DNA of 64,000 nucleotides from Paragordius varius (taxonomy: Eukaryota > Animalia > Nematomorpha), in contig OZ176057.1 of NCBI GenBank assembly GCA_964247055.1, positions 2,480,001 to 2,544,000 on the forward strand. Direction: 5' to 3'. Below are positions 929 through 59,440 of this stretch, piece by piece (within the stretch, counting starts at the first letter, position 1; each line of letters opens with the position of its first letter). A program made the translations under genes and the position numbers. The notes beneath the pieces are model-generated. The model was not told the DNA's origin. It worked only from the letters and a program-made list of their open reading frames with translations, and did no database searches.

Positions 929-3900
929 ATTCTAAAAAAATATCAAAAGAAAAATTGAATGCAACCAAATCATCGCCAAGTTTAAAGGCCTTACATGTTT
1001 TGAAACGTCGCCATTCTCATCACAAAGGTAATGCCTGTTTTTGACTTTAATAATTAACTTTTTTATTTTTTAATATTTAAGTCTACATTCTATAAGAGAG
1101 TAATTTCTTGCAAATAAATAATATGTATTAAAAGATAACATTAAAATTTTAATATAACTTAATCAGTGCCTGTTTTTTTTGAAAAATAAATAATTTTGAC
1201 TTCGGTTCGAAACGGCCCTATAAAATATTATATAAAGTTTTATACTACTAGCCGTATAAAATTTATGAAAAGTTCAAAAACAACAATCAGACGATATATT
1301 ATTGTTAACCTTATTAGGATGTTATATATATATATATATATATATGTATACTTATTATTTAACAAAAAAACTATTTAATTTATAATTTTATTGCTCACCC
1401 CATATATTTACCATTTACAGTTTAAATTCACCCTTGAACAAATCAAATTTACCCTAAAAATTATATGTTATAAACTTATATAACTCATATTAGTATGAAA
1501 TATATCTTAATGGCATAGTTTATTATTTTCAGTATTATTTTTATTTAAAACAAAATTTTTATTTTTTTATATTAAAATATTGGTAATTTTTAATCTTAAA
1601 AAACATATATTTTAGTTGAGGGTAATTGTTTTACCGTGAATTTGAATTGTCCAAGGCTGAATTTGAATTGTTTAAGAATGAATTTGAATTGTTCAAGGGT
1701 GAATTTGAATCCTAAATGGTATAATACATATGATAAACAATTTTTTAGAAATATTTTAATTTTGATAACTGACTTTAGTTTTAATATATATTATATGTAT
1801 ATATATAGTGGAAACGCCTGAAAACAGTAACTGCTCTATGAATGAACAAAAGACAAATTCCTCAAACATTCTTATATCACCTAATGACAATCTTGAACTC
1901 ATAAATGAAAATGGACACCCTAAAACTCATGATTTAAACCCTAAAACTCATAATAACAATAATAATAATCATCAAAATCAAAGATGTTCCAGTATAACAT
2001 TAGGTACCCTTTTACCGTATTCGCCCAGTTTAGATTCTAAAGCAGAAAATTTAGAAAGTCCCATACAAAACGATGAATCAAACAGAACAAATAAGAATGG
2101 AGAAATAATTTCTGACAACAATTTTGAAAAGTCCACGTATTTTGCCGATGATAATATATCACCCGATGCAATGTTACGTATTTTTTTAAAAAATATACCT
2201 CGCGAAACATGGACAGAAATTTTTGGTGAACCCTTGCCAGGTATTAGCTTTTCTTTCAATCAATTAATTTTAATGTTGAAAGGTTAACAGTTTTTATTAA
2301 CTTTTAGTATAATACAAAAAAAGTTTGATTTTTAAAATAAGTTTTCTCAAAGACAAAATACAATGATTTCATACTGATATAGTAAGGTAATTTGCAACAA
2401 ATTAGTGTATGGAACAAAGAAAGGAAATAAATGTTTATTCAACATTTTATTGTTTTTTCTATACACTACTGCGTAGCAAATTGCCCAACTATAGCAGTGT
2501 AAAATAAGCAATTATTAAAATACATACCGTATATAATAATTACACCTAGTTTTAAAATAATTATATATTGGTATTTTGAAATATTGCTATGTATATTTAT
2601 ATATATATATATATGGATATAAATTAATTTTAGTCTTAAAGACCATATGTAAGCCTGAATTTTACGGATTTTACTATTTTTTAAACTATTTTTAAAGTTT
2701 TTTTTATGCATTTTTTCAAAAATGGTATGAAGGATATAATATAATTTGTTTATTTTGTATCGTTATATTCAAATCATTTATAATATTTCTCCTAAATCAA
2801 TTATAGATCATGAAAATCTCACCGTATATCTTTCACATAATTTTTTGGATGAATCAAGCCAATCAACTTTTGATGTTAACGGCAATTGCTTAATTGTAAG
2901 GAATGATGGAACTAATATATATTGTTGTAATTTAAAACCCATCGAAAAAATGGTTAAAAACCCTTTAAAGGTGTCACAAAACTACTGTGGGGACAATGCT
3001 AAAAATGTTGACCATCAAGCCAATAATTTAAACGTTGAATTGATTAAAATTGGAATACTGTATAAACGAGTGGTATGTAATGCTAAATTTTATGAATAAT
3101 GTTGAGTTATGAAAACAAAATATTAGTAACTTTTTTTTAAAGAAACCAAAGTTTTTTATACCATTTACAGTTCAATTTCACCCTTAAACAATTCAAATTC
3201 ACCCTTAAACAATTCAAATTCACCCTCAAACAATTCAAATTGACCCTCAAATAAAATAATGTTGTTTTTTTAAGATTAAAAACTTATATTTTATATATAT
3301 TTTAAAAATACAAATTTTGTTTTAATTTAAAATAATACTGAAAAAAATAATGAACTATACCATATACACATATTTCATATTAAAAAAGAGTTATATTAGT
3401 TCGAAAACACATAAATTTATTTTTAGGGTGAATTTGAATTGTTCAAAGGTGATGTGAATTTGAACTGTAAATGGTATTTAATATATCAATTTGCTTATAT
3501 TTTTAGGGTTTATTTGCTAAACGACGCATTTTTTTGTTGTGCCGAAAGGGAATACCCGCCAAATCGATTCAAGAAAAAAATTGTGATTCCAACATTATTA
3601 ATAATGATGATCGAATTTTAGTCCTTTATTATGTGGAACCTCAAAGTTTGATAGTTAAAGGCCATATTGATTTGTAAGTTTTAGTAAATTTTTTGTTGAC
3701 ATTATGTTACAGTATCTTTTATAAATTTACGGAAATAAAAAAAGACAAATATAGTTTTTTTCTAAAGAATAACTCTATTTTTTTTACTACAAAGGCCTTA
3801 TAATTCATTGGTAAATGTATAATTGAGAATGTTATCAATTTACTTTCTCTATTACATATTTTGCGACCCCCAAAAAATAGTCTTATAATAATTAAGGTTT

Positions 3901-8786: not shown

Positions 8787-11700
8787 ATGCATTTAACTTA
8801 TTTTACATATTTTTTTGTTTTATTCGTAAATTTACATACAATCCATGGTAGTTCATCCTATGCAGAAGAATTTAAAACTATATATTCGGCTCCTGTCAAA
8901 CCCCATTTTGGTAGAATATGGCCACAACCTACCACTCAGACGACATCAAATGATATTATGACCATTGATTTGGATGATTTAACCTTCACCTCGCCTAAAA
9001 ACTGTCCAATTTTAGATGCTGCATTTATTAGATTTGAAAAGCGATTAAAATTACTTCTATTTAATATCGTTCAAAAGACATTCCCAAATAAGCCTTACAT
9101 TAATAATTTTGTTCTCGATGGCTCTAATGATACCAAATCTAATTTGGTAACTACTAATATTACAATCGTGATCAATGAACCCCAAGTTTGTGAGTCTATC
9201 CCTCATGTCGATATGATTGAAAATTGTAAGAATTTTGAATAGAGCATTGGCTTATATTATTTATTGTGCATTTTGTCGTCAAATTTTTTAATAATTTTAT
9301 TAAGGTTAACAAAAAAATGTTTATTTTAGTTAACGAATTTTGAATTACATTCACCAAACAAAATAAAAATTTAAATTTTTCATATTTACTTAGCAAAGTT
9401 GTCAACCCGAAAAATTGAAATTTATTTTTATATTATCAAACTCTTTTTTATATTAATCTCATCAAAGGTTATATTTGGGCTTTTTATAACGAAAAATTGT
9501 TGAAAAATTTTAATAAGCAATTTATTATTTAAAAAAAAATTATTTCATTCCATCCCTAAATCATTTGTTTCTCCCCTAGTCGTTTATTGATGCTTAAAAT
9601 GATTCTTTATATTAAAACATGGTTTAAAGGACAGTCGTTCAATATTAATATTTAAAATTATTTTATATTTACAATTTATATTATGATTGAAACATTTTTA
9701 ATAATTCTTTTGGAAAATAAATGGTTACAGTACTCAGAACTATTCTCAACCATTTTGGATTTTTAACACTTCGATTCAAATTGGGGTATCTGAATACCTT
9801 AGACTAAATTTTAATTAATATTTTAAAACTTAAGGAAACGGTTTTAATTTAAATTTATGCTTCTATTGATAAAAATTATATAAATATGCCAAAATATCTT
9901 AACACTTGGATACAACACACTCATTTTAGTCCTTCGATTCAAATTGGGGTAGTTAGATACCACAGGCCTCTTTAAAATCAAATAGTTTGAAAAGTATGGA
10001 AGCAATCGAAACCATGGCAAAATTTTGCACTTATATAACATTAATAAACCAAGGTATCGAAAAAAATTTATTTAAAAATAATTGATAATACTTATTTCAA
10101 AGTAAAACTCAAAGGTAAAAATTTAGTCAACGTGTGACATGTGTGCATTGGCTAAATGAAAAATAATACAAATTAAACCGCTTTTTCTATTTCTATCAAT
10201 GTTAGCTGTATTTTAAATGAAAAATTAGCATTATTTTGCCTTCAAATTACATGAGGACGATATTTTGCAAAAATTTCGTATAATAAAAATGGCGTCGAAG
10301 TAGTTTGACATGGAACTTTTTTTTTCAAAACGAAATTATATTTAGATAATTTGGCATATTTATTTAATTTATATTAGGATTCAAGCATAAATTGAAATGG
10401 GGACCGTTTCCTTCAGTATTTTTTTATAATACTAACTTTAATTAAGTCTGAGGTATTTAGATACCCCAATTTGAATCGAATTTTTTTTGTTTTTATTATA
10501 ATTACATTTTTTGAAGTTGTGAGGAAAGTGCATAAGTTAATGAAATATGCAACTAATTAAATGATAAAAAATCTCACACATTTGGCAACTGACATGTATA
10601 AATTATATTCCCATCCAAATCAATAATATTTCTAATCAATGCATAATTACCGTGTATTATAAATACCCTCCCTAGTCAATAACGTCTAATATAAGTTTTT
10701 GTAAAATGTGAATACTTAAAACCCAAAGTATGTTAATATCATATACCATTTACAGTTTAAATTCACCCTTGAAGAATTCAAATTTACACTAAAAAAAAAT
10801 TATGTGGTTTCGAACTAATATAACTCATTATTTATACAAAATATATCTTTAGGGCATAGTTTATTATTTTTTCAGTATTATTCTAATTTAACACAAAATA
10901 TAATTTTTCAAAAATATATAAAAATATAGGTTTAATCTTGAAAAACATATGTTTTGTTTGAGGGTAAATTCAATTGTTTAAAAGTGAATTTGAATTGTTT
11001 AAGCGTGAATTTGAATTGTAAATGGTATATTTTCTTTCCTTTAGATTCCATCACCGTTAATTCTTCCGGAATACGGATTCAAGCGCCCCAAGTATGGGGC
11101 ATACTTCGTGGATTAACGAGCCTTTCACAGCTGATTTATTCACCACCCCCATCAGCTGATGGTGAGAAAACAGCTGAAACGCATGCGCTCATTAATCATA
11201 CGGAAATCCAAGATTCCCCTAGGTTTGGATTCCGTGCAATTTTGTTGGACACATCAAGACATTACCTGAGTTTACCTGTCCTGCTAGAAAATTTGGTTTA
11301 ATAAATTTTTTTTAAATTATTTTTTTTATTTTTTATTAGATTTATTGATTTATTTTAATATAAAATGGTATTATTGATTACTAATTTATTATTATATATT
11401 TAATTTCTTTAATTATTTTTTTAGAAATTTTTACCATTAAATATTATATTTTTATATATTTAATTTCTTTAATTATTTTTTAGTAATTTTTATTTTAATA
11501 TTTTTGTATTTTTCTTTTTTTCCTTTTTAATTTTAAATTGATAAATTATATTAAAATTATTTTATATTTGGATGTGCATGCGAAAAATTGTAACTTTTTT
11601 GAGTAAATTTATATTAAAAATATATATTTACACAAATGGTAAACTATCCTTAAACCAATATATATATATATATATATCATATTATTGATTTGGACAAAAA

Positions 11701-14700
11701 CTCTATAAAATAATTTAGTATTTAATTTTAAATTACTAAATCATTTGAAATTTTTTACTTAAATATCAAAAATTATCAAATTATAATGATAAAAAATTTG
11801 ATATTTTTGTTTTTTTTGTTTTAATAAAATTTTAAAAAGTTTTTAAGTGTAATATTTGTTTTTTATTGTGATTTTAAAAAAAATCTCTTTATATGATTAA
11901 AAAAAGATAAAATATGGATTAACTATGCTAAATTTTTTTATTAGATTCATTAGACATAGAAAATCAAATTTATAGAATTTTATTATTTCACAGTAAATTA
12001 ATTTGAGTTTAAAATACATAAATTATTGTGGAAACATTTTATTCGATTTTTTTACAAAAAAAATTTTTTTTCAATCAAACTTAATTTTAAAATATTTTTA
12101 TAATTATTATTAACTAGTTATAGAAAAAATTCATCTCAATAGAATTTAATTTCATTTACACGTAAATTATTGTGAAACATTTTTTTCGATTTTTTTTCAA
12201 AAAAATTTTTTTTTATAATTTTTATTATTTTATTAACTAATTATACTAAAATATTATATTAACTAATTTTTTAATTTAAAAATATTATTTTTTTAGATTT
12301 TTTTATATTACAGTATGCATTCTAATGGTTGCTTATTTCAAACTGCTATGGTAGGACAATTTTCAACCCAGTAGTGTATGGAAAAAAGAATAAAATGTTG
12401 CTTAGTCAATTGATTTCTTTCTTTTTTTCCATACACTACTGTGTTGCGAAATTGCCCTGCTAGAGTGTGAAATAAAAGCAACTATTAAAATGCATCATAT
12501 ATTATATTTAATTTTTTAAAAAATCCAAATTAATCAAATTTAAATTTATACAAAATTATATTTTTTTTTTATGAAATGATTTTTATTAATTTAATTTTTA
12601 TTGAATTTTTATTTTTTAAATAATAAATAATTTATTTTTATAGGATGCTATGGAATTCAATAAATACAATGTATTTCATTGGCACATTGTTGATGATCAA
12701 TCCTTCCCTTTTGTCAGTAAGACATATCCTGATTTAAGTCAAAAAGTATATTGTAAATTTATTTTATAAATTTTATTATTTTTAATATTTATAAAATTTT
12801 ACATATCATAAACAATTCAAATTTACCCTTGAACGATTGAAATTTACCCTTAAACAATTGAACCCTTGAACAATTAAAAGTAATTCTTGAACAATTGAAA
12901 TTCCCCCTCTTGGACAATTCAAATTCATCCTTAAACAATTCAAACAATTTCACCCAAAAATAATTCAAATTCACACTTGAACAATTCAAATTTACCCTTA
13001 AACAATTCAAACCCTTGAACCATTCAAATTCACTCTCGAACAATTCAAGATTTCACGCTTAAACAATTCAAATTTATACCATTTACATTTCAAATCCCTT
13101 AAACAATTTAAATAATTTCACCATAAAATAATTTAAATTCACCCTTGAACAATTCAAACAATTTTACCCTAAAATAATTCAAATTCACCCTTGAACAATT
13201 CAATCAAATTCATTCTAAACAAATAGATTATGAAATATCGGTCTAATATAATTTATCATTAAAATTAAATATAAGTTTATGGCAAAGTTTATTATTTTTT
13301 CAGTAATATATTTTAATTACATACAAAATTTCTTTATTTAAAAATATGAAAAAATATATAGGTAATATCCTAAAAAACAGATAATTTATTTTAGGGTGAT
13401 TCGAATTGTTCGAGAATTAATTTAAATTGTTAAAGGGTGAATTTGAACTGATGGTATATTTTTATAAAACATATACTATTTACGCTTCAAATTCCTCCCT
13501 CTTGAACAATTCAAATTTCACCCTAAAATAATAAATTATGTGTGTTTTTTTTAAAATTAAAAATTACCTATTTTTACAATATTTTTAAAAAAATGAAAAA
13601 TTTTTTTTAATATTAATAAAAAATTTAAAAAATAATAAATAATCTATGCCATAAAGATATATTTCGTATCAATAATGATGTGTTATATTAGTGCCAGAAA
13701 ACACATAATTTATTTTTAGGGTGAATTTGAATTGTTCAAGGGTGAATTTGAATTGTAAATTGTATATCTAAGATTTATTTATTTTTCGATCTAACTAATT
13801 TATATTTATATATTTTAAGATATAAATTGTCTATATTCGCCTTTTTTGAAATTAACATAATTTTATTTTATTAAGACTCAAGATTTATACATATTTTTCA
13901 AAAGCTTTTTTATTACAATAAAAATTAAAATTATACGGACAAAATGTAAAAATTTAAAGACAAATATTGACAACTATTTTTTTAAAACCCTTAATTTTTC
14001 TCATATAATCTATTTAATTACCATTGTAAAATATAGAATTGATTATGTTAGTAAAATATATCTCTATTCATTTAATAAAAATAAGTTTTGTTGAAAAAAT
14101 CAAGCTTTTAAAAATATATGGTTGTAGAAAAAAACATTTGTCTTTATATTTTTACGTTTTGTACGTTTCAGTTTTTACTGTATATATTATAACATTCGTT
14201 AATTCATTATGGGTATAATTAATTTTTGAACAGTTTTTTTTATCAAATTTATTTATAGTTTAATATAATTTTTTTATGTAAAAAATAAAGTTTTAATTTT
14301 TTAACTATTTACTCTTACTTCTATTCTCGGGTTAAGTTATTATATTTTAAGTTTAGTTTTAAACAATATTAACATTTAATTTATTTTTTTGATTTATATT
14401 TTTTTACGTTTTTGCAAATTATTTAAATACCTTAATTACAACAAAATTCGCTTTCTCCAGTAATATATTTATTTTTCAGTTTTTTTAAAATTTTTTAAAA
14501 ATAAAACATTTTTAAACATTTTTCAAGGTTTATATATATATATATAAATATATATATATATAGCAAACTACAAAAAATTATATATAAAATTAATTTTTTT
14601 CTTAAAAATATGATTTTTTTGTCTTTTTAGGGTGCTTACCGGCCAGATTACATTTATACGCCACGTGATGTGGATCTACTCCTTACATATGCTCATGAGC

Positions 14701-15908
14701 GGGGTATTAGAGTTCTAATGGAATTTGATACACCAGGTGAGCTACTTTTAAATATTTTTCCTTAAAATTAATTGATTTTCTTTTTATATAAGATTTGAAA
14801 CTATTTTATGAGTTAAAATATAATTTGGAGTTTTTTTTGGAATCTAAAGTTTTGTTGAGATTTGATTGGATTTCTTGAGATGTAATATGCACATATATTT
14901 TAAACAACAATTAGAGTTTTTTTGCTAAACGTTTGAAAGTATAATGATTTTTCAAAAAAATGATTGATTTTTAAGACAAAATTTCGATAATTTGCGGAAT
15001 AATTGCCTGTAATTTTGAGAATTTTTTATTTCGTGATTGGATTTGATTTGCTAAGATGTGAAAACAATTCTTATCATTAAACCAAAAAATTAGAATTTTC
15101 ACATTAATTGTCTTTAAATTAAAAATCAAATTTTTGAAGTTTTAATTTGATTTTAGCGATCAGTAAGTGTTTAAGATGAATAGGAATTTAGCTTTTTATA
15201 TATTTTTTGTTAAATAAAATCTGTATTGTATAAATCCGTTTTACTTTGATAAATATAAGTTTTTTTTACAATAATGAATCGAAAATTAATTAAATTTCAA
15301 AATATAAATTTTTTTGGTGTTTAATCATAGGTCATACTCTAAGTTGGGGGCGTGCTTACCCCAACATCCTTACAACATGTTATAAACCTGTAGAGAATAC
15401 CGACCATGAAATACAAAATGAAATTCCACAATCAACTTTTAATAAGGTAAAATTTAAAAATTCTAAGAGATTAGTTAGACTAATATATAATTAATTTTAT
15501 TTTTTATTAAGAACTCAAAAGCAAACCAAATTTTGTAATTCTGAATTTTTAACCTAAAATTTATAAGGGCTGAGTTTATATTCCTAAATTTTTTTATTTC
15601 AATTACTTTTTTGATAATTTACGGCATTTGAAGCCAAAATTCGCACATATATATGCCATTTACACTTCAAATTCACCCTTGAACAATTCAAATTCATCAA
15701 ATTTACCCTAAAATAAATTAGTGTTTTTTAAGATTCAAAATTACTTATATTTTTTTATATTTTGAAAAAATTTAATTTTGTTTTTAATTAAAATAAAACT
15801 GAAAAAAATAATAAAATATATGTCATATTAATGATGAGTTATATTACCCCGAAAACACATAATTTATTTTAGGGTGAATTTGAATTGTTAAAGGGTAAAT
15901 TTCAAGTG

Positions 15909-15952
<44 letters not shown>

Positions 15953-18900
15953 ATATAAATCCGCCTTTTATATCTAGAAATCCCTATTTTCCAACTAAAA
16001 ATCATCGGTTTAACTCAACAATTGACGTTTACTAAAATAAATTAACCTTTTTATAGATTTCTATAAGATATATATGATAAATTTATATTTCTCATATATA
16101 TATATACATACAATTAAGTGTGTTACCACAATTTATTAAGACTGAAGACGACATTAAACAAATAATCATAAGTTTTTAAATAATGTATTTGAGTTTCTTT
16201 GCAAGTTTTTGAATTAAAATCAATCTCCACTCTTTTTTTATATGAAAATATTCCAGATAAAATTTAAATAATCATTGCAACCAGCATTTTTTGAGACTTA
16301 AAAATCATGGCGGGCCGCAAAATAAAATATTTAATTTGATGACAAACCGAATACTGTAAACTTTTAACATATAATATACCATTTACAGTTCACATTCCTT
16401 GAACAATTCAATTCACCCTTGAAAAAATTTAATTCACCCTTGAAAAATTCAAATTCACCCTAAACATAAATTATGCGTTTTCGAACTAATCTAACTCATT
16501 ATTAATATGAAATATATATGTATGGCATAGTTTATTATTTTTTTAGTATAATTTTTTTAAAAGAAAATTTTTATTTTTTAAAAATATAGGTAATTTTAAT
16601 ATTACAGATATTTTAATTGTAGGTGAGTTTGAATTGTTCAGGGGTGAGTTTGAATTGTTCGAGGGTGAATTTGAATTGTTTAAGGGTGAATTTGAATTGT
16701 AAATGGTATATAACAATTTTTCTAATATTTATTCTGGAAATTTGTTTAGGAAACATCCTAAAAGATTTCATGAGCTTATTTTATCAAATTATTTTGCGGG
16801 CCACATTTTGAACCCCCCCTCCATTTTAGAGTATTGAACAATTTTATGTTTCTAAAAAGATTTCTAAAGTCCAATTCTTCTAATGATATTTCTTTTTTTC
16901 CGTAAATATTATTGGGTAATATTTAATTCACGAATTATACATATTTTTATTATTTTTTTTCCATAAATTTTATTTTTACCCATTAAGGCTGGTATTATGT
17001 GTGCTCCCCTGCCCAGTACAGTTAAACGAAGGAAAAAACGTTATTTTAGACATGATGTAAAAATATCCAAGCAACATGATATGAAACGATTACTCAAAGC
17101 AAATCAAATGGAAAAAGAAGAATCATTCGATACCCAAAAACTTGAAGAATTATCTAGAAGCAAAAGGTAGTGCATATAACTCTAAGAAACCTATATCAGC
17201 GAGAGTTATTATTAGTTGGTCATTTTGTTAAATAAATTTGCTAAATTTAGCTTGTCTATTAGATTTTTGATTTTTATTAAAAAATAAAAATTTTTACTAA
17301 CAAAAGATTCAGTTCCTACAATTTATGTAACTTATAAAACTGAAAATTATTATACATGCTAAAAAGTATTGTAAATTAAACCTTAAAACACTCATATGAC
17401 CAATAAAACTCTTGATGTTTAATACTCATATTCATAAGTTATGCAATGGTTTCCAAATATCTAAAGTCAGTATAGTATAGTGGTTAGTTACTGTAGAATA
17501 TTTATAAACTATTGCGTATAATTAAAGAGCTAGTATGAATAATTTTGTTATTAACAAATTAAAAACATACTTGCTCAATAATATGGCTGTTTAGTGTATT
17601 CGGTTTTTTATTGGAATAATCAGCTCTCTTTTTTTCGTAAGGAATATACTTTATTTTAGTATCTGCTTGAAACTATATATAAAATATTTGAAATATGAAA
17701 TTATTTGATGTTATACTTTAATTCAAATTTCGAAATAAAAGTACTTTTTGGCGAAGTCGTAAATATATTTTTAACTTTTGATTTAATTTAATTAGATTTA
17801 AAATAAATATGTATTTTCTTTAACACAGACTCTCCAATTTTTATTGGCTAAATAAAAATTATATTGACGATTTAAATGTGCACATGCCTATATTATAATT
17901 TTATTTTTGTTAAATCATTCTTTTTTTTCGGAATAAAGTATGGTCGAGAAACGGAAAGATACATCATCCAATCTTGGGGATTACTTTACCTGGTTGCTGA
18001 TGGCAACCACATTTATGTCTCAGCTAAATCCGTTGTCATGGAAACATCATCCCCTGTCTGGCAAAAGAGAAAAATTTAGCCTTTATAATTATTCGGATAT
18101 TGACCAACTTCAAAGTGGTTCCAATCTTTTTGCAAATATTCATACAAATCATAATAATGCACATAATGAAATTAATTTTGATTCCCTTTTGGATGAAAGA
18201 AAATATTTACATCACCCTAATCAACAAATGTATCTACAAAAAGCACCTCATATCTACGACGCCATTTTATCGTCTACTGAATACAATAAAAATAAAAGAA
18301 TACGGGGAGAAACTCCAACACTTGATTATAACCTTAATCTTAAAAGTATATATTATAAATAATTCTAAATATTAATAAAATAAGTAATTTCCTTTTGATT
18401 TTGCTTTTTTGCGTTATATTTAATGTATGTTTATAAATATTTTTAGTGAAAACCTACAAGACATGTTACTTTTTGACATTTCTCTCATCTTACAGTCTGC
18501 AAATTTATGCTGGCTTATTCTTATCGGACGATTTGGAATATATTACCGTGTGTTTAAATTAAATTTCTCCATAATTAAACAAAGTAATGTAAGATATGAA
18601 AAATTGTTTAATTTAAAAAGTTTGTTGTTTTTTTCGACACACTACTGTGTTCCTAATCGACCAACTATAATGCGAGTAAGCCAGAATAAATATGCATGCT
18701 TTAATAATTTTTTTCTTTAATTTCAACCTATAAATAATTAGAATCACCTACAGATGTTTTAAATCCATTAATTTATGATTGTTGGAGCCTGAATAAAAGT
18801 AATTCTTTATCGCGTGGTGAAACATTGCAAAATATTTTATCGTCTGCCACCACCAATAATCATGTGCTTCAAAATGATGGAGTTGGTACTGAGGCAGACG

Positions 18901-21900
18901 ATACATTGAGCACTAATAACGATGAAAATAAGATGATTATATCCAAAACTGATTCAAATACAACAACAACAAATGTTTATGGTTCAAATCAGCTTCAAAA
19001 TATTGATATTAATAATATAAATCAAGAAAAAAGTCAGGATGATTCATCAAAATTAACAAAATTTGTGGAAGATACCACGATACGAGGACCCCTAAACCCT
19101 ATCAGTTCTGAAACTTATGAATTCTTGAGTAAATTCTTTGATGAAATTTTTGTCCGGTTTCCTGAAACTTATATTCATTTGGGTGGGGATGAAGTCTTAT
19201 TCTCTTGTTGGTATGTACTTTACAGATCTATTTTTGGATTAAATACTATTTTTTTTAGATATGAAGAAATAAATATATGTAAGATTTAAACAAACCTTTT
19301 TGGTAAATCCACTATGTTTAAGAAATTTTACGAACAAAAGTACTGTAATTATTTTCAATTTCCCATTTTGATGTGTTTTTTTTTGGTTTTAATTCCTTTT
19401 TTAATTGACAAATTTTTAAGTTAATTGGCTACATATTTAAAATATAATGTTACTTTTTAAATCTAAAATATTCTATTTATTTTTAAGGTCTTCGAACCCA
19501 GAAATACAGGCCTTTATGAAAGCCAAAAATTGGACAAATTATGCCTTGTTGGAAAATTATTACATTCAGAAACTTATAACAGACATTTTGAGCCCTAAAG
19601 ATGCAAAACGCAAATATTTGGTTTGGCAAGAGATTTTTGATAACGCAGTCTCGGTATGATAATAAACTTTGTTTTAAATAAAAAATAAATTGAGTTTTTA
19701 CCAATATCGTTTAAAAATTTGTTAATTTAGCAATTAATCTTAGTTTATTTTGCCAAAGTTTATTTAGTTTCTGGCCATGTTTATTGTAACAATCATTTAG
19801 TCTAAATTATTATAACTTATTCATAATACATACTGAAATATGTATCGAAGGGGCAATTTTTTCATAAAAATGGCTGTAGTTTATTGGAAAAAATTAATTC
19901 TATTTAAAAACACAACAGATAATCTATATTATTGGGTCCCTGTTGCGTTTAGAGTTGATTAAATCCATATTTAAATATGTTTTTTTAATATGGTTTTTTG
20001 GATTTGTACCATTATATATTTTACGCCCTGTATCACTTTTAACCATTTTATTGTAAAATTTACTTTATGGTGTTAATTATAAAAATGGTCACATTTTTAC
20101 ATTTATGTTTTATTTCAAATTTTTTTACCTATTTTATGCCCTATATATCATTTACAAATCATATTTTAATGATTTAGAAAAAAACGACACATTCTTTACT
20201 TTAAACCAAATACAATTTAATTTTTTTTAAAATATCTATTGGTATTTAATTTTAATATCAATTGCACCTCAAGTCGATATTATAACACTTTCAATAGGTC
20301 ATTCATAATCATAATCTTTTAAATATATATATTTAACTATTGTTCAAACTATCAACATTTGTCATTTTTGAAACATCCCTTTTAAAAAAAAAATTTAATT
20401 TACAACAGTAATTTTTATCAACGGGCCAATTTAATATGTTCAGGGAACTATTTCATGAGTTTAAGGACCAATTTAATATGGTTAAGAATTAATTTTTATT
20501 TAAAAAAAATTTTATTCTGTATTTTAGATTAACAAAGCAAACACGATAATTCATGTGTGGAAAGATTATTGGAAAACTGAATTACTGAGCATACTCTCCC
20601 AACAAACTTATGCCGTTTTAAGTTCACCCTGGTACCTTAATTACATTAGATACGGACAGGACTGGCAAAATATTTATACTGTTGAACCGTTAGATATTCC
20701 AGGATGTATGATATATTTAACCATATATATATACCATTTACAATTCAAATTCACCCTTAAACAATTCACCAAATATTTTAGAGATCGGACTATAAATGTA
20801 ATTTTTGTGAATTTTATAAATATCGATAAAATTTATTTTTTATAAAATTAATTATGTGTTTTCGGGCAGATAATATAACTCATCATTAATATGAAATATA
20901 TTCTTATGGCGTAGTATATTATTTTTTCAGTTTTATATTAATTTTTAATAAAACTTTATTTTTTAAAAATATAAAAAAATATATTTAATTTTAAAAAACA
21001 CATAATTTATTTTAGGGTGAATAACTGTAAATGATATATATATATATATAATATGCACATTTATGTTGGCTTATTCATATTATTGTTGGTCAATTGGCAA
21101 AACAGTATCATATGTTATGAGCCAAATTTTGTCCATAATTAAATAACCAATTAATGTTATAAGTTAAATGAAAAAGTTGCATTTTTACATTTTGTTATTT
21201 TTACCTATGCGCTACCGTGTTGTTGATTTACTAACATTAATGTGAATAAGACAGCATGAACGTACATTTATACTAAATTGTAAAGTATAAATATAAAAGT
21301 AAAAAAATAAAAGACAAATATATTCATATCAAAACAGCTGATTCCTCTTCTTTCCCCTTTTAGCCGCGATTTATGAGAAAAAAATGAAATATTTGCATTA
21401 AAAACGTAAAAATTAGACTTATTTCAAGCAAAAAATAATTGATAGCGGATTTAATCAATTAATATATAATAATAAATATATTAATGATAGAGATATCTGA
21501 TAATAATAAATGACGGTTACATAATATTTTTAACTAGTAAAAAAATTTATTTAAAGGTTTTATCAACTATAAATGATATTAACATAAAAATTATGGCCTT
21601 ATATCATAATTGTTAAAGGTTATAATTTACTGATTTGTTTCTGTAACTATTTTTAAAAATTGATTTTATCCTAAAGTTTTTTTAATTATTTTTATATATA
21701 TATATATATATTTATATCATCAGTTTCAATATAAAGTTTATAAATAAAGGGACAAATGTTTTTCACTAAAAGACACAAAGTTGACTATATAAACATAAAA
21801 TTTGTATGTTTTGAATTTTATTATATTTACATATTATTTTTAATGTTGAATTTTTTTAAAATCAGATTTTTTTTGATTTTTTTTCCTATATATATAGTAA

Positions 21901-24900
21901 AGGATTCAGACACGCAATATTTACTGGGGGGCGAAGCTTGTATGTGGGGTGAATACATCAATGACGCTAACTTATTAACTACACTTTGGTACATAGATTT
22001 AAATTAAATTGAATTTTCTAGAAAAATTTTTTTTTGCCCTTTGATAAATTATGTTTTTTTCAGATTAACATAGAGGGTATGAAAAATTTATCCATCATTA
22101 ACACTCCTTTTTACCTTTTGGGGTAGTTTTGTATCCCAGAGCGATTTTAAATTTGGATATCTAAAAAGTATTTAAGGTATTAATAATCCGAATTTAAAAA
22201 TATGCTTTTTTAGCCTTTTAAACGCATTATACAAATTTTTTTTAAAGATGAAAAATTGTATAAAAATCCCTCAACTCAAACTTTTTGTCACCATCATTTT
22301 TTATATATTTGTTTAAATCGCCAACAGACATATATACATAGATATATATATTATGGTTCGAAAATATTATTAATTAACTTTAAAAATCGTTCAGGCTACA
22401 TTTTCTCAACAAAACAATTATATTTTGATTTAACTTTCAGCGGTTCGTTTCAAACGTTTTTTGCTTTCGACTTTAGACTATAGAAGTCAAAATATGAGCT
22501 ATTTAATCTTATACATGTCAACAATGTTTGAGAATTAATTTTAACCAAATTTAAACTATAATTTTGCTCTGAGATATAAATCTAAGCCTAAAGGTAAGCT
22601 TAGACGGAAAAGTGAAAAGATAATTAATTAAGTTTTAAATTAACAAAATTAACGTTGAAATATATGTGGAAAAATTGTTTAATTTCAAACATTTATTGTT
22701 TTTACCATAAGCAACTGTACAATTTAAATAATATAAACATTTTATTTAATTATTTTAAATTGTAGAATAGAGTGTACTATAATAATTCTAATCATATACA
22801 TTAAAAAGTAAAAAGAGATATAAATAAATAATATATAGTTTTTTCTTGTTAAAATATTAGTATTCTATTTCTCCTTAAATTAAAAAAATTGTTTTAATGA
22901 AATTTAATAAATATATGTGTATGTTAATATTTGGCCATTTATTATGTTTATATTTGTTAATAAAATCTATAAACCTAAACTTTTTTTGTTATCATCTCTT
23001 TTACCCAAATATATGTAAATAACTAATCAACCGTATTAGTAATTTTTAAAAATGATATACGTTGGAAGCTGTTCTCATATATTTTATAATACACAATAGT
23101 GATCCTAAGAAGTGTAGTAAAAAAACATCTAAAATTTACTCTTGAACAGTTCATATTCACCCTCATATTCACCTTAAAACAGAATATGTGTTTTTGATTT
23201 TACATGAACAGTAATCTTTTGAAAAATTATGATTTTTGTTAAATTTGTCCTTTATAAACCAATTATAATAGCAACACATAATCTACTCGGATTTCCGTGA
23301 TTTATTTCTTAAATTATCATACGTAAAATTTTAGAATACATGTAATATATGAGGAAAAATAAATTGCCAGTTTTTGATTAAACTATTGCGAGATTGCAGC
23401 ATTTATAATGAAAAAATTTTTTATGTTTTTAATTTTTTCCTTTCACTTAAATCTCCTAATTTTGTATTTTCACATTAAATTACATGGTAAAAACAACAAT
23501 TGGTTAAAATTAAACAATTTTTTCCCCATATATTAACATTCATATTGTTTGCCTATGTATGGACACACTTTTTTTATGTCCTTTACTTATACTAATGGGT
23601 TTTGTAGCTCTTTAAACAAGAAAGAAATAAATAAAAAAAAATTTTAACTTATTTTTATTCCTTTATGTGTGTTGATCTTACAGTGTGAGTAGATATTCAT
23701 TGCTAAATTTTTTATCAAATATTGCCAGGTGGCATATAAACCAAAGAGCCTTATTGTTAGTTATTAATAGTAAAAAGTTAAAAAAATAAGTATAAACCAA
23801 TAAATAATATTGCTCTTTGCTAAATCTGCTATACTATCTGGTGGTAATAATTAATGAAAAACTAGCACTGTACTCACTCTCATACTGTAAATTAAATTAG
23901 GATTTTGAAATACATATATAGCGAGTATTTTATTTTGTTTGAACTTTTTTTGACTTTTTTCTTATTATAATAATACATATATAGCGAGTGTGTTATTTTG
24001 TTTGAACACTTTTTTTAGTTTTTTTTTGACTTTTTTTAACCAAAAATAGGCCTAGGGCCAGTACCGTAGCAGAAAGGTTATGGAGTCCGCGTGAAGTAAA
24101 TAACGTTACAGAGGCGGCCACTCGTTTATCCGCACATGCTTGTCGAATGAAACGGTAAATTTTATTATTCACAAAATTATTTTAATATAAATCATCAAAA
24201 CAAACTATATTTCTAAATTATTATATTGCAATTATAATTCAGTTAAAATTATATGAATTTATTATATGAATTTGCGATTACTACAAGTAATCTTTTTGTC
24301 AAACGTAAAAATAAAATTAAAATATAAACTAAAATTTTAAAATATAAAATATTTTTTTAAATTTTTGTCAAAAAAAGTGTGGGTGGGGTTATTTTAGGGG
24401 TAAATGATAATTTTTAATTAATTTAGTAATAAAATACAATAATTATTATTGTTATTAGCGGAGTAGGAAAAAATGTATTTTGAATGGTTATATAGTATTT
24501 TCTTGAAGTTGATAGGTAGCCCATAATGATTGAAGTATTTGAAGGTAAAACTAAATTGTTTCGTTTTACTGAGTTTTAGGATTTCCTACATATAAGGAAG
24601 TTGCAATAATGGGCCATGTCTAAGTAAAAGTTGCCAATATTATCATATTGTGTAGATGGGTTATTTTCAGTTCTTTCTTGAGGTTATAATGATAAAACTA
24701 TGTATGAGAGACAAAAATAAATTTACAAAATTGGGCTTTAATGGATCGTATATATATATATAATATTACATATTGCACAAATGGGTATATTAACTGCTGT
24801 TAAAAGATTACAAAGCTATTTATTAATATTATTGCAGAAATGAAGGGGAGATTATGGGGGGGTTGGGATTTAAATTGTTTTTTTGAGATAGGCCATAATT

Positions 24901-36499: not shown

Positions 36500-38545
36500 T
36501 TATTCAGAATCGCTAGTGGTAGATGAACTGCTAGATGTGTTTGAACTTGAATTGTCATTATCTGATGAAGAAGAAGTCGACGAGTTCGAACTTGAACCAG
36601 AAGTACTTTTAGATTTTTTGCTGCTCTTTCTTTTATTTTTGTCCGTTTTAGCGTTTTCTTTCAAATTCTCGTTTGATTGTTTTTTGACAACTTTTTCGTC
36701 CGTTACTCTTTTGGCGGTTGTTCTAACTTTTTTGGCATCACGTTCGGCGGCGTTGTCATGACGACGGTTGCTATTGGCAACGGAGCTACCACCTGATTTC
36801 CGGTCAGCTGCTGATTTAGATCTTGAACGTTTTTGCCTGGCTCCTGAATTTCGCCCAATATCAGCTGATTGATTTATAATGGAGTGATCATCTGTTTTCT
36901 TACCACTACTGAGTTCTTGCGCAAGTTTTTGTTCCTTAACATCAGTCACAATTGGTTGTGAATTGTTATTATGCGTAGACTTGATGTTTTTGTCCTTTAA
37001 ATCCGTGGTGGACGTATTACTATGTGAAACAGAAACACTGTCAGTAACATTTTTAATTTTATCTCTATATATATTTTAACAGAAAATGGTATAATTTAAA
37101 TTATCATGAATAAAAATTAGGTAAATTATGATCGGATATAAATGATATCCAAACGTTTAAAAAGTTAATATTTAGCTCCTAAACTATCCCAAAACACATG
37201 GATAAAATTATTTGTATAAATATTAAAATGACAATTACAATAGAAAACTATCTATAATCCTTAATCCCCTTTTAGAAGTCAAACAGCGCGTAAATTATGT
37301 TTATACATGATAGATTTAAAGACTCGTAGCATGTTAAACCTTGATGATTTTTTATCTTTATCATGCGGGTATTCATTCCTAGTGGATGAGGAATAGTCCT
37401 CTTTTTGGTTGCCCCCGGCAACAGAAACAGCCTCTTTATTAACTGTCTTTTCCTTTTGGTTGCCATCGGTAACGGAAATATTCGAGACATTTGACTGAGC
37501 ATCATGCATGGGTTTTTGTTTGTTAACAGGCGGTATAAATAGTTCTTCTAAAATTTAAGCAATTTCATTAAATTATATTAATTAAATTATTATCAAGATT
37601 TATTCAACATGTGAATTCATGTTACCAACATTTATGTGCATTATTTAGCCACCCAAAATTAAGGTTCTTTGTGGTTTATCAAAATATTTTTCATTTCACA
37701 AAAGACCTTAATTTACTATTTTGTTTTGCAAATAATTCCAAATCATAAAACTAATTTTAACATATCAAAAATAAAAATGATATTGATGAAAAAAATTACT
37801 AGTTTATAATAACCATTCAATCAATAATTAATCTAATCTTATTTGCCTTAAAAAAATAATCTTTAAAATTGAAAAAATATTGGAAACAAAACAGATTTTG
37901 ACCAAGTTAGTTTGATTATTTTACATATATATTTTTAAATAATTAGTAGTATTTTTGGTATCTAATAAATATATATATATACACTAATATTTTAATATTA
38001 AATGCAACATCAAACCTTTTTCTACCGGTTTATGAGACGAACCAGCTGATTTCGAATTATCATGTGTTTCATCTTTCCTGTAATGTCCGGAATCCTATAA
38101 TAGTTTATATAATAGATTTTAACTTCAATTTTAAAGGTACAACTATTAAGATTAAAAAATAGTAAAGTTAATATTTACTTCAAATAAAAATTATAAATAA
38201 AATAACATAAAAAGTTCAATTTAATAAATTTGCGTTAAATTGATCCAAAGCTTAAATTTTATCCTCAATTTGGAATCACTAAATAACAAACAAAGTATGA
38301 TGTACGCATATATATACGTATATTTATAAACAAAATAAAAATCTATAAACAGTTGTCAAATAAAATGACATGTAAATAAATTATTTTTATCATTGATAAA
38401 GTCATCTTCATAAAATGACAAAATTTTTTTGAGGCATTCTAAAATGGACAATAAAAAATACTTGAGTTTGCTTTCGAGAATTCGAAGAATTGTAGGATGG
38501 GACAACAAAAGCTACTATAATTTCTTGACCATCAATTTGACCTAA

Positions 38546-38592
<47 letters not shown>

Positions 38593-41151
38593 TTAAGAAT
38601 AATGAAAAAATAAACCAAAATAGAATATGAAAAAAAGATTTGAGAATTTTAAAATTCCATAATTCCGTAGAGAGAGAGAAAACCTCCATTCATAAATTTT
38701 TGAGCTTTGGCCGCTTCATTGGGTGTTTCATATTCGACGTAAGCGAAACCACGTGAGTACTGAATGTGATGACCCATTCGATCACGTGGCATATCAATGG
38801 CAACAATGTTGCCATAGTGACCGAAAATCTCTTTGATGTGATCGGCGGTAACGTGACGCGTCAGCCGGGCTACGTGAAGTCGACAGGGTAGGACATCTGG
38901 TTTCTTAAATTCGGAGGCGGTTGAACCAATAGCAGCGTGTTGTCTTGATGCAACAGTTGTAGATCTATCAGGTGAGCGAGTCACGTGGGTATGGCGTGAT
39001 CGGGTTGCTGCCCCAGTCCGAAGTTTTGGTGATGGTGTTCTACAATAAAATTATAAAAATAAAATTAAGTGGAAAAAAATATGGCTGATATGACTAATTT
39101 TGCTAACTGCTGCTAAAAATTGGGCAAATTGTCACGCACATTTAAAAAAAGACCGCAAAAATATTTTTTTAGTAATTACAGGGCATTTTTAAAATGTATG
39201 TATAAAATATTAGAATAGTATGTTGCTGCTCTAAATAATAGTAATTTGGAAACGAATATGAAAACCAGTCAAAACTTTATATAAATACGATAGTAAGATT
39301 CTTATATGTAAAGTAGAAAAATATACATTATAAATATAATTTCCCAAATTATTTAACACGTCAATAAGAATATAAATAATTAATATTTATCTATACAAAA
39401 TAGGTACGTTTCGTGGGTTCAGTTAAAACAACTCAAGCACATGTGACAGCTAAAAATTCGCCTCAGAAAAATTTAACTTTAATTTCGAAATCCATGCGCT
39501 GTAACATACTTTAGAATAAATAAAATGAAAATATATAAAATCACATGTATATCAAAAAGTCATGTATATATAAAAAATTATTTTACCGCGTAGAAGATCG
39601 ACTCTTCCTAGGTTTAGCGAGACTGTGATGATGACCGGAAGTGGAATGAGGATCTTTCCCTGTCCGGTCTACTCCTCGGGTTTCTGATCGACCATATGAT
39701 GATTTAGATGTATCAGCTGGAACCAAATTAGTCGGGGCAGCTGATGATGACGGCGGTTGTTTACTTGACTTTAATGTAAAAAATATAACAATTTAAACCA
39801 TGAACTTATACAGTAAATACCTTTGAATATTTGTAATTAACATTTAAATATTAGGAGTAAAAAAATGAATTATAAAAAGAAAAAAACAAAGGGGCATGGT
39901 GCACGAGTATGCATTACCATGCCCACCAAATAATAAATTTTTTTTACTTTTGTTAAAAAATTACTCAAAGTAATAATATCAATAAAAATAATCCGCTAAA
40001 GAGTAAAATAATATATAATTAAAATCGAAATTATAGTATCAGTTTTAAAAATCATTTATAAGTTTTGCGATATAATTGTCGCTAAAAATTCGGGTAAACA
40101 AATATTTCTGGACATCAAAACAATAAAAATACCGCTGATGTCATTTTTGTCGTCTCCGATTTGGCAGACGATAATTTCTTGATAGAATCGTCTGTTTTGT
40201 TCGCTACTGTTCCAGATGATCTTGGAGGAAAAGCACTAAATAACACACATTACAGAATATTTCAAATAGATTTTTTACTCTAATTTAATTTAAAATATTT
40301 TTGATACAAAAAAAGGGGTTTAGAAACAAAATGTTGCGGGTTCAAAATTTCACTAAAAAATTAATTTCCATTATTTTTTGGTCAAATAGTTAAGACTTTG
40401 TAACCACATTTTTTATTTAAATTTATATAAATCATCAAGTGTAGGCAAACTTTTATAAATTATAAATATTGCTATTATATATAATTAAAATCCATACAGC
40501 ATAACTTGAAATAGAAAATAGTTAGACAAAACTCTTTTGATTTTTCCATTAATTCCTCCATTTAAACATAATTACGTATATTAAACCCTGTATGAGGGAT
40601 ATGATCGCCTGTGTCAACGCGTGGTCTTCTAGCTTCCTCAGGAAGTTTCCTACCACTAGCTCCAGCATGATGATGAGAAGGTTGTTGACCCCGACGATCC
40701 CGTTCACGCATCATGGCACGATCTTGACTCCGACTGCGTGCGCGTCTAGCAGCACCCGCCGGAGGTGGAGAAGAACGGCGAACACCACTTCGATAACTAT
40801 CGTTTCTATGACGACGACCGCTATCACGTGCTTTAGCGGAGGCAGTGGATTCAGGTCCGGGTCTGCGTCTACTTACAGCTCGGGGTGATGGAGTACTTCT
40901 TGATGAGCCTGCGAATTTGTGTAAAATTCAAATTTAGAATATGACCATAAAAAAATTGATGTGCCATTATAAAAATATTTTACAAAACTTACCGGTGGAA
41001 GAACTCGAGCTACTGCGACTTCTATAAAAGATTACTATAAAATAAACTTTGATCCGGATGTAGTGCTAGAGGATGAGAAAGAAGATGCTCTTCTACGCTT
41101 AAAACTACCAGAAGCATTACTTCTGTTTGTTACTGGTCTACGATCTCCCAT
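36500..41151 (-). CDS. RNPS1: RNPS1-like exon-junction-complex/ASAP SR-related protein with one RRM, strongly extended (about 675 aa)
   Basis: Minus-strand exons 41151-41048, 41021-40993, 40908-40587, 40235-40133, 39768-39587, 39039-38684, 38541-38462, 38094-38016, 37547-37340, 37064-36500 (2028 nt). The RRM RLHVARLTRHVTADHIKEIFGHYGNIVAIDMPRDRMGHHIQYSRGFAYVEYETPNEAAKAQKFMNGG|QIDGQEI matches human KVHIGRLTRNVTKDHIMEIFSTYGKIKMIDMP..SKGYAYVEFENPDEAEKALKHMDGGQIDGQEI. There is an N-terminal Ser-rich tract. Confidence 0.9.
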
Positions 41152-49969: not shown

Positions 49970-52963
49970 AGGAAGTGTGTTGGACACCACTGGTGGCTCA
50001 AATATTGGTGAATATTCCTTTCTAGAAATTGGTAAGGTCATAAATAAGCATTTCAAACAGTTTTAAAATTTCAGCTTGGATTAATTTTCGATCGAATTTA
50101 TGGGCAGTATAAAACCTTACTTATATACATACACGCTCCTAAAATTCAATGTATTTCAATCCACAAATCCACAACACATGGCTGTCTTTGACATAATTAA
50201 TTTTAATTATATATATACAAATATTTTTCTAAAATTTAATTTGTGCATACATAAAAAGTGTGTGAGTGACATTTTTAGCCTAATTACCCGAAAACAAAAC
50301 AACGATAAAAATCATTAATTTTTTATAAAAAGCTATTTTGATGACATAAATCACTATAATTTTACCGAAAAATACCGCGTAAAAAACAATTTGCAAGAGA
50401 CTACTATCCTAGTTGATTTTAAGGGAATTTGCCTTATAAATCTAAACAAAATAGGAATGTCATAAAAAGATTACCATGTTATGTCATTTTATTATACTAT
50501 AAATCTTTTTTTCAAATACAGGACATTTGAAAAATTAAAGTTTTTTCAAATGTACGTAAAAAAACGACGAAAATTAATGAGCTTAGTATTTAACACATTA
50601 GCACCTCACCTACCTCTGGAAAATATTTTATAAATACAGTTTGAGATGTCTTGACATTTGTCTTTTAAAAATTAAAAAATAATATTTTTTTTATTTGCCA
50701 AATTTTATAAATATTGGTTTTCAATTAATATCTCATGTACATTTCTATCATTTATATATATATTCCAATGATTATTGGGGCCCGTCAAACATTAAAGGGT
50801 AAGCAAAAATCATCTGATTTTATATTACATGAATTTTAAAACTGATTCAAGGTTTATGTATAATTTTTTTCAAAAACAGGCCAACAAACATTTTAATTTT
50901 TAATATTTTATTAACTAAAATATAATTTCTTATATACATAGGACCAAAGTTGTATATAAAAATATCCCAATCATATCCATTAAATAATCCACACGGCGGT
51001 TTTTTCAATCATCTTTTCCCACATTCATTTTTCGCTAAGTCATCAAATTTGGTTCATTTAAAATGGGAGTTAGTATCACAAACAACATTTAAATATGGGC
51101 AGACTAAGACCGGAATTTATAGTGAATTCTTAAGGTTAATTACACGGTTCCCCAAAGGCGAATTCTTACTTGTGCACAATGCCAAGGATTCTAAAGATGC
51201 AGATCAATCCCATCTTTCAATAGCTCCTATTTCAAACGCCATTCAAGTTTTTGAAGTGCAAACAGGACAAATCAATCCAACACCTAATGTTGTTTTAAAC
51301 ATGTCAAAATCTGTAAATTTTGACGACACAATACCAAAATTAACTTATAGATCTGATTTAACTTTTGAAGCTAGACATCTTGAATGTTTCTACGAAGGCT
51401 ACATGATTTTCGCACAAAGTGATCAATATATTCCTGTGTCCGCAAACACGTGCGTCAATCGCAATAAGGATATGGATAATACCCTATTTTCAAGCCAAAA
51501 CCTTGTAAATATTATTTGCCTTCATTAGAAAGTGAAATTTTAAATTTTTGTAAACAAAATTGTGACACGTAAATACCTAAAGACAATTCCATGTTTTTTT
51601 AAGGAGATAACCAAATTTTTAAATCTTAATTTTTTTTAACTTATCGTTTTGGTTGGATAGCAAAATGGAGAGTAGAGACGTAAATTTTCCATATCAGAAT
51701 ATATTAAATAAATGATTATCACGAAAAAACAAATGAATATCCAAATGAAAAAAATGATTAGCACACGGTTAAAAAATCTCTAAAGACCCTTGATGAATGC
51801 TTTCTGATGTATCTACTTATACATTTAACATATTTCTTAACATGCGCTGATCATTTTTTTCATTTGGATATTCATTTGTTTTTTTTACTCATTTATTAAT
51901 CTTAATGTATTTTTAATTGTAATTATATAGTTAATGTAGAAAAAATCAATTCAAGTATGGTTGTTTGTTCCAAAAAATATTTGTCTTTTAATTTTTACAT
52001 TTTGTCCGGATAATTTAATATTTTACTGTCATTTAAGCAATTATATGAACAGTAAACTTTTATAATTGGAAAAAATATATAGTAGCTAAAATTAAAGATA
52101 TGTATATGATTTATTTTCTTTTACATGCACAAGATTATATTCCTAAACCATGAGGGTGTTTTATGGATCATTGAAAATTCCAACAGTACAAATTTTAAGC
52201 GCCAATTCCAAGACTTAAAGATGGAATCTAAAACAAAAAGCGATAGTCAACTAATGTTACTTTATCCGATTGGAAATGACTTATTCTTGTTTAATAAGAA
52301 AAGAATGGATAAATATAAAGCTTATTCCATATCAAATCATGCAATGTTAAAAAAGTGTCCAAAAAATTATAGCAATAACACAATCAATCGAGATAAGCGC
52401 GACACAGATGCCAGAAATATTCAAGATTTAAAGTTTATAGGAGAGGCTATGCTTCACGGAGGGCAGGAAGAAATAAATTATTATGAAAAAATAAGGCAAT
52501 TGGCAAATTTGCTTGACTACAAAACCACAAAACAGCTGATGAGTTGGGATTTAAATCCAAACAATGATACAGCAGTTGCTTCAAAACTGGATTTTACCCT
52601 TTTAGAGGGGAAAAATAAGCGGGCCAATAGTCTTTTTGCGAAACACGTGTCATCGCAACTTAATTCCTTTCACGAATACTTGGCCAAAGTTAGTTTCTAC
52701 TTGCTTTTGCGTCGGAATATTTTATGAACATAATTAAAACGTTTATATCTGCTATAAATTTTTAGATGATACGACACAGGAAAATGGAGAAATTGGTTGT
52801 CTTATCACGGCGATGTGGTGTCCGAAAAAGTAATATACAGTAAAAATTGAAATTATACGGACAACACGAAATTTTAAGAATATTTTTTAGAGACAAACAT
52901 AATTTTTATTAATTGATTTCTTGGATATAACTAATTTTCTAAAACTGCAAAGTATTAAAAAAG

Positions 52964-58900: not shown

Positions 58901-59408
58901 GTTAAAATTTATTAATTTTTTATATCATCAACGGTTTTTACCTCGTTCATGCAAAATTTATTATTTTATTTGTCCAATTCACTATGCATGCGAAAAACCT
59001 TCATGAAACGTACATATATTTTTCCGTTAAAATATGCATGAACATTCGATTTATCAATTTTAAAACCGAGCTCTCGCAGGTTATCAAAGTCATATAAACT
59101 TAAGGAAATTTTTCTATTGGTAAAAATTTGAAAATTTACATTTAATTTTAAAAAAGAAGTTTTTCTATACTATTTATTCTTAACGCTTTAAAAAAAGTAC
59201 CAAAAATTTATATTTTTTTATCTAATAAAACCGCTATTTTTTAGAATGTTTGCCTTACACTATGGTGCCTAAACAGTGGGGGTGAGATTACTTTCCCTGC
59301 TCTTGCTGGGACATCTTGTGGCTCCGGAAAGGTTTTCAAACAATCTCGTATCTTAAAACTGAAACCATACACTTTGTTAAGGATTAATTTTAGCTAGAAG
59401 ATATATTA

Positions 59409-59440
<32 letters not shown>

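Follow-up and report, generated by a model that had tools for sequence, protein, structure and literature searches.

An expanded-loop candidate in a horsehair worm beta-hexosaminidase

The window analysed here is a 64,000-nucleotide stretch of the horsehair worm Paragordius varius (contig OZ176057.1, positions 2,480,001 to 2,544,000 of the forward strand), with a GC content of about 25%, and its plus strand carries a gene for a beta-hexosaminidase of glycoside hydrolase family 20 (GH20). An earlier note, made from the letters of the window, had claimed a very large, multi-exon insertion between the core motifs TTCY and GPLNP of this enzyme, in the loop that is processed in human HexB, and had read it as an internal propeptide or cargo. 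Based on a comparison with the ortholog of a second horsehair worm, Gordionus, and on the coding and splicing signals of the window, we consider that the gene probably encodes an ortholog of the animal lysosomal-type beta-hexosaminidases, in which the TxCY-GPxNP loop has undergone a tolerated, lineage-specific and disordered expansion that would be translated and probably clipped. The features concerned are as follows, with a slash marking the splice site in donor and acceptor sequences.

8787..24152, plus strand: GH20 beta-hexosaminidase gene, found as 10 collinear pieces by tblastn of the Gordionus protein (P0152); the 3′ limit is at least 24152.
15331-15446, plus strand: exon 5, the core end and the first 21 insert codons (15384-15446), with donor AAG/gtaaaa in phase 0.
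15447..16987, plus strand: intron A, lineage-specific, holding two copies of a very high-copy miniature inverted-repeat transposable element (MITE), at 15644-15960 and 16363-16730.
16988-17166, plus strand: candidate exon 6, 59 codons and 2 bases, ending in SRSKR, with RRKKR at 17021-17044.
17167..17938, plus strand: intron B, lineage-specific, repeat-free by search within the window.
17939-18345, plus strand: candidate exon 7, 135 full codons, ending in NLNLK, with the dibasic sites KRK, GKR (18060-18068), RK and KR.
18346..18741, plus strand: intron C, lineage-specific, with a mid-copy repeat at 18498-18693.
18742..19085, plus strand: 5′ part of exon 8, holding the final 114 codons of the insert (the split first codon included), rich in Asn, Thr, Ser and Asp.
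19086..19210, plus strand: GH20 core part of exon 8, GPLNP...HLGGDEV (with the catalytic Asp-Glu pair)...CW.

Searches and comparisons of the window protein were made exon by exon. By tblastn, the core exons align collinearly with Gordionus CAK9299727.1 (32-76% identity for the individual exon pieces), and the core intron positions are common to the two genes. At its start the gene encodes a signal-peptide-like sequence (N-terminus, exon 1), and the exon 1 peptide matches the N-terminal domain Glycohydro_20b2 (PF14845) under the cut-off (E 0.036), a domain that is assigned in the Gordionus ortholog by precomputed Pfam annotation. Further small inserts relative to Gordionus, of about 15 and about 6 residues (the latter KTAETH), were seen in the N-terminal domain (8787-9221 and 11065-11295). 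The exon 8 peptide matches PF00728 with an E of 9e-11 (42 bits, above the cut-off of 22.3) and the human HexA/HexB chains with an E of 4e-11; HLGGDEV lies at about 19176-19196, and the other core motifs, including WPRA..AERLWS, are present and align to the Gordionus ortholog. The Pfam match and this collinearity agree with the claim that the catalytic and other GH20 motifs are intact. Likewise, three-frame translation recovered every open frame, splice signal, phase and motif that had been described: the phases across the insert exons run 0, 2 and 1, the exon 8 extension begins with SPTDVLNPL and runs to EDTTIR directly before GPLNP, and arithmetic on the exon pieces gives 21+59+1+135+1+113+1 = 331 codons from TTCY to GPLNP.

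Coding evidence for the extra exons

Stop codons make up 0.0756 of all triplets in the window, and a chance run of 114 open codons such as that upstream of GPLNP has a probability of about 1.3e-4. The 141-codon open run that holds exon 7 (17937-18359) is the 8th longest of the 9683 runs in the window, the number of runs of this length expected in the 3.3-kb interval being about 0.004. For exon 6, the length of the open reading frame (ORF) alone is non-significant, as the stop frequency predicts about one run of this kind in introns A and B.

Composition and codon usage point in the same direction for all three pieces. Their GC content is 0.30-0.34 (0.34 in exon 6) versus about 0.20-0.25 in the flanking introns, and in each of them it falls from the first to the second to the third codon position (GC1>GC2>GC3). 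With a log-odds score trained on 907 core codons, taken from the window gene and from its ortholog in Gordionus, with intron trinucleotides as the background, the proposed frame reaches 0.36 per codon in exon 6, 0.37 in exon 7 and 0.34 in the exon 8 extension; the alternative frames stay at or below 0.02 (0.02 and -0.20 in exon 6), and 56 stop-free intronic ORFs of at least 40 codons, taken as controls, have a mean of -0.17 (standard deviation 0.18, maximum 0.138). All three pieces are unique within the window and show single-copy read depth, by which an origin of the extra exons from transposable elements was ruled out, and the local assembly across the exon 7 region is matched by independent DNA contigs. 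Scanned against Pfam, the three pieces returned chance-level matches only, and no homolog of the exon 7 peptide turned up in a word search, which covers proteins of 0.55-1.75 times the query length. Exon 7 and the exon 8 extension are well supported as coding pieces. Exon 6 is the least certain piece, backed by codon usage yet dispensable for the frame.

A long insert in the same loop of the Gordionus ortholog

The closest database relative is the beta-hexosaminidase subunit alpha-like protein of Gordionus sp. m RMFG-2023 (G. montsenyensis; XP_065318162.1 / CAK9299727.1), and in a HMMER search with the exon 8 peptide XP_065318162.1 (P0002) was the sole relative with a match reaching into the insert. 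All three public Gordionus models (RefSeq isoforms X1 and X2, and CAK9299727.1; two annotation pipelines) have 162 residues between TTCY and GPINP, encoded inside a single 666-bp exon (GHTLSWG...TTCY-162 aa-GPINP...CW), for which the chance of being open by accident is 3e-6 and which again shows GC1>GC2>GC3. The alignment with orthologs that had been proposed as a check thus finds an insert at the identical position in a second horsehair-worm genus. The claim of a very large loop insertion stands on this and on the best gene model, and its weakest part is exon 6.

The two RefSeq isoforms differ in the N-terminus only, and the Gordionus ortholog spans 26 kb (L001, 3001-29282) with a 9-kb intron just 5′ of the insert-bearing exon. 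This locus is 26% GC, and the Gordionus genome, whose annotation was aided by RNA sequencing, is 26.9% GC and 64% repeats, mostly DNA transposons (10.1101/2023.06.26.546503). The two worms share a long polar insert in the identical loop and genomes that are AT-rich to an equal degree, whereas the inserts themselves differ: 162 residues, one exon and no dibasic site in Gordionus, as against about 331 residues, three introns and seven dibasic sites in the window.

In 47 other animal orthologs the loop has 9 residues in 41 cases and 16 at most. Genomic ORF fragments from other animals extend from GHT to CW, or from the intron upstream of TxCY to CW, with an intron-free loop. Since the loop is intron-free both in Gordionus and in the other animals examined, the three introns in the window insert are lineage-specific. 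The Gordionus protein as a query retrieved 3808 GH20 proteins, among which there was none from another nematomorph and no further insert carrier. One 887-residue protein with GPLNP at residue 698 (P0001), considered as a possible carrier, is a tandem fusion of two hexosaminidases and has no insert.

Haplotype variation across the insert

In the DNA read run X1 a second haplotype was seen at 14927-15262, 17718-18066 and 18703-19160, roughly 4-10% divergent in the few contigs seen, with many small intronic indels, indicating either an unusually high heterozygosity or a pooled sample. Among the differences listed, the second haplotype carries 6 synonymous and 1 non-synonymous changes in the GH20 core (19083 to the end of exon 8), and 2 synonymous and 8 non-synonymous changes together with one in-frame 9-bp deletion in the stop-free segment 18744-19080; the indels listed in intron C are of 1, 3, 3, 1, 1 and 4 bp. 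This pattern fits a translated segment under weak constraint.

A low-depth contig of 424 nt in read run X5 aligns to 18742-19040 only, its other 125 nt being unlike the window, and its alignment ends precisely at the proposed acceptor 18742. It is not the expected spliced junction, because the mean depth in this run is 0.25 over 18191-18361 and there is none over 16994-17164.

Structure of the insert and the human HexB loop

The inserts of the window and of Gordionus are similar only in the last few residues by GPxNP, with Smith-Waterman scores within the shuffle range, and neither tblastn nor blastn gave a match of any of the three window pieces to the Gordionus insert or locus. Both are polar, consisting to 52-67% of N, S, T, D, Q, E, K and R versus about 40% in the core, and neither is a homopeptide (sequence entropy 3.8-4.0 bits). 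Judged from these sequences and from the changes between the haplotypes, the insert appears to evolve nearly freely, that is almost neutrally and without a conserved sequence element.

An AlphaFold2 model of the Gordionus enzyme, built on a 48-sequence alignment, has a predicted local distance difference test (pLDDT) above 90 in most of its core blocks, while the insert has values of 27-69 and three weak helices; compared with human HexA and HexB the model gives a target-normalised template modelling score of 0.92-0.93. In the model the Gordionus enzyme thus has the whole HexA/HexB-like fold, outside which the insert lies, and the proposed check that the barrel folds around an external loop is borne out in this predicted structure. 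Exon 7 folded alone, with no alignment, gave an uninformative pLDDT of 37. A transmembrane reading of the hydrophobic stretch pointed out before was ruled out, as the top 19-residue Kyte-Doolittle mean is 0.65.

The human enzymes (HEXB and HEXA; PDB 1nou, 1o7a, 2gjx and 2gk1) share with the window gene the GH20 fold, the catalytic HLGGDE and the position of the loop. In HEXB this loop is the nick site of the mature enzyme, and in HEXA it binds the GM2 activator; the PDB chain named 'beta-hexosaminidase subunit beta chain A' (2gk1_N, 1np0_D) begins 4 residues before GPINP, and RQNK312-315 of the beta subunit is the counterpart of GSEP280-283 of the alpha subunit, in the loop needed for GM2-activator binding (PMC3129794). 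The chain start and this correspondence confirm the placement of the insertion in the HexB processing loop. The human HEXB loop has, however, only 9 residues (TPCY-SRQNKLDSF-GPINP) and nothing like an insert of 160-330 residues. By analogy, it is plausible that the worm loop would be clipped as in human HexB.

Basic sites and the peptide-cargo question

The basic clusters on which the propeptide or cargo reading was built (RRKKR, GKREK and NKRIR) are present in the window but absent from the Gordionus insert. RRKKR in exon 6 fits the furin-type pattern R-X-K/R-R, and it would be accessible, if one goes by the modelled disorder in Gordionus and by the low confidence of the fold obtained for exon 7 alone. 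Convertases might cut there and at the KRK, GKR, RK and KR sites of exon 7, so that the enzyme would be activated or retargeted or independent peptides would be released, the insert being brought into the secretory pathway by the N-terminal signal peptide of the enzyme. In exon 7 the dibasic sites are more numerous than composition predicts (4 observed versus 1.4 expected, P about 0.02 in shuffles), whereas their clustering in exon 6 is non-significant. The nearest clusters of exon 7 in a language-model feature search are neuropeptide precursors (galanin at 0.87, followed by spexin, CCAP, bombesin and FMRFamide precursors; scores 0.83-0.87), and a control piece (18744-19082) found unrelated matches in the same search; these scores, with 125-150 shared features, lie below the trust threshold of 0.9, and the tool rates such matches as a lead only.

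Neither a dibasic nor an RX[KR]R site occurs in the Gordionus insert, such that the cleavage sites are not conserved between the two worms, and this insert has no similarity to exon 6 or exon 7. For exon 7 there is no Pfam match (E<=1) to a neuropeptide precursor family beyond chance, no homolog of comparable length, and no repeated peptide copies. In the window the dibasic sites are confined to exons 6 and 7, with none in the exon 5 tail or the exon 8 extension; because of this confinement and of their absence from Gordionus, a conserved convertase role for the insert as such is unsupported. An internal propeptide or cargo cut at the furin site, as the earlier note had proposed, is unsupported in that form, given the Gordionus insert lacking dibasic sites, the lack of similarity between the inserts and the mostly non-synonymous haplotype changes, and we consider such a cassette distinctly unlikely.

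A more specific form of this idea concerns exons 6 and 7 alone. One of the dibasic sites in exon 7 is Gly-Lys-Arg (18060-18068), an amidation-type signal, and the two exons might form a prohormone-like cassette within a secretory enzyme: the signal peptide would lead to the endoplasmic reticulum, convertases would cut at the clustered dibasic sites, Gly-Lys-Arg would end a peptide of about 34 residues, and free peptides would be released with the enzyme halves staying together as in human HexB. We regard this as a long shot. The worm is a parasite known to alter host behaviour, and, if the cassette were real, such a precursor, carried piggy-back by an enzyme, would open a new route to secreted signalling peptides.

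Splice logic and alternative exon chains

All three GT donors at the end of exon 5 (15390, 15447 and 15474) are in phase 0, and the acceptor 18742 is T-rich, with the exon 8 frame open right up to it. A direct join of exon 5 to 18742 hits a stop, because 18742 needs one upstream base. The splice sites of the extra exons resemble the proven sites of the gene, exon 6 having the acceptor ttacccattaag/G and the donor AAG/gtagtg.

Several points weigh against the expanded, translated loop that we favour. By exhaustive enumeration the interval allows 37 one-exon and 1926 two-exon in-frame bridges, and phase compatibility alone is therefore weak evidence, because short in-frame bridges are common by chance; exon 6 is dispensable, in that 15446>17949 keeps the frame too; and the dibasic clustering in exon 7 hints at some constraint, which would not be expected of a purely neutral insert. 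No transcript support came from the read runs: where a run contains the stretch, its contigs cover introns, which marks it as DNA, and two runs labelled as this species and as possible RNA (X6 and X8) contain nothing of the gene. Nor did the sequence searches return any Paragordius varius protein among their matches. The chain of exons 6 and 7 is second by coding length among the 1926, the first being its own 3-nt donor variant, and 176th by splice score. Ranking of the exon chains by splice score was dropped as non-discriminating, as the matrix is crude and many short MITE-derived chains score well.

A shorter insert is conceivable, in which exon 6 is skipped or is no exon at all and exon 5 is joined to 17949, 10 nt inside exon 7 (FNK/KRKDTSS), giving an insert of about 268 residues, possibly as an alternative isoform. 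The chain 15446>17949-18345>18742, which leaves out exon 6, is the longest one-exon in-frame bridge, and the open length of exon 6 carries no significance of its own. Against this, the codon-usage score of exon 6 in its proposed frame lies above all 56 intronic controls, its GC content and codon-position gradient are those of the other two pieces, its acceptor and donor are good, and the acceptor at 17949 (gag/A) lies downstream of a better one at 17939 (aag/T). We consider the shorter variant unlikely.

Exons 6 and 7 might also lie outside the hexosaminidase mRNA altogether, either as a nested same-strand gene (ATG at 16997, stop at 18360) or as non-functional frames, with exon 5 spliced to 18993 or 19038 and a loop of about 37-52 residues. 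Both pieces start near an ATG, a stop follows within a few codons past each proposed donor, exon 8 offers in-frame cag acceptors at 18993 and 19038, and the read runs examined contain no transcript of the gene that would speak against such an arrangement. Such splicing, however, leaves unexplained the 85-100 open codons upstream of 18993 and 19038 (P about 1e-3 to 4e-4), which have coding codon usage and end at a strong acceptor, and every proven acceptor of the gene has a pyrimidine tract, which the in-frame internal ones (18894, 18933, 18993 and 19038) lack. Neither a homolog of comparable length nor a Pfam family was found for the putative nested protein, and in Gordionus the long insert at this place is genuinely translated sequence, as indicated by the models, the single exon and the open-frame statistics. 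An origin of exons 6 and 7 outside the mRNA thus appears quite unlikely.

Other features of the window

The very abundant MITE family, with arms from the motif GGGTGAATTTGAATTGTTCAAGGGTGAA, occurs not only in intron A (15644-15960 and 16363-16730) but also at 10932-11054, 12789-13200, 13400-13760 and 20730-20790, with up to 28-33 overlapping non-self matches in the window and a depth in run X1 thousands of times that of single-copy sequence. Elsewhere in the window lie its five longest stop-free runs, of 172-205 codons, for which Pfam gave no match at E<=0.001 and which may represent additional coding sequence specific to the lineage. Two domain matches mark neighbouring genes.

52110-52724, plus strand: stop-free run.
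50926-51525, plus strand: stop-free run.
36503-37075, minus strand: stop-free run.
59381-59944, plus strand: stop-free run.
1769-2284, plus strand: stop-free run.
38652-39050, minus strand: exon with an RRM_1 domain (E 1.4e-13).
61488-61898, plus strand: weak Adt-1-like match (E 2e-4, under the cut-off).

Discussion

Based on these findings, we propose how the expanded loop of the beta-hexosaminidase may have come about and how the enzyme would cope with it. First, the surface loop that links TxCY to GPxNP, short in other animals, would have expanded in gordiid horsehair worms into a long polar insert. As the two ends of the loop would be adjacent on the barrel exterior, the enzyme could fold around the insert, and it is because of this adjacency that the insert would be tolerated. 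In the secretory or lysosomal pathway, proteases would then probably cut the insert and leave a two-chain enzyme, by analogy with human HexB.

AT-rich genomes such as that of Plasmodium falciparum carry low-complexity, fast-evolving inserts rich in Asn, Ser, Lys and Thr in the surface loops of enzymes. The insert described here resembles these in occurring in an AT-rich genome, in a surface loop of a conserved enzyme, and in evolving fast, while it differs from them in that it belongs to an animal, is no homopeptide and is split by new introns. Most likely, we are dealing with one case of a general tendency of an AT-rich genome to grow loop inserts, and not with a dedicated functional module.

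Provided that the gene model holds, 160-330 extra residues are tolerated by a conserved lysosomal-type enzyme, at the very loop that is the nick and GM2-activator docking site in the human enzymes and that almost all other animals keep at 9 residues. Three introns would have arisen inside this lineage-specific insert, which would make it a clean, datable example for the origin of coding insertions and new introns in an animal genome that is AT-rich and laden with transposons, and homology-guided gene models in such genomes will tend to miss or truncate exons of this kind.

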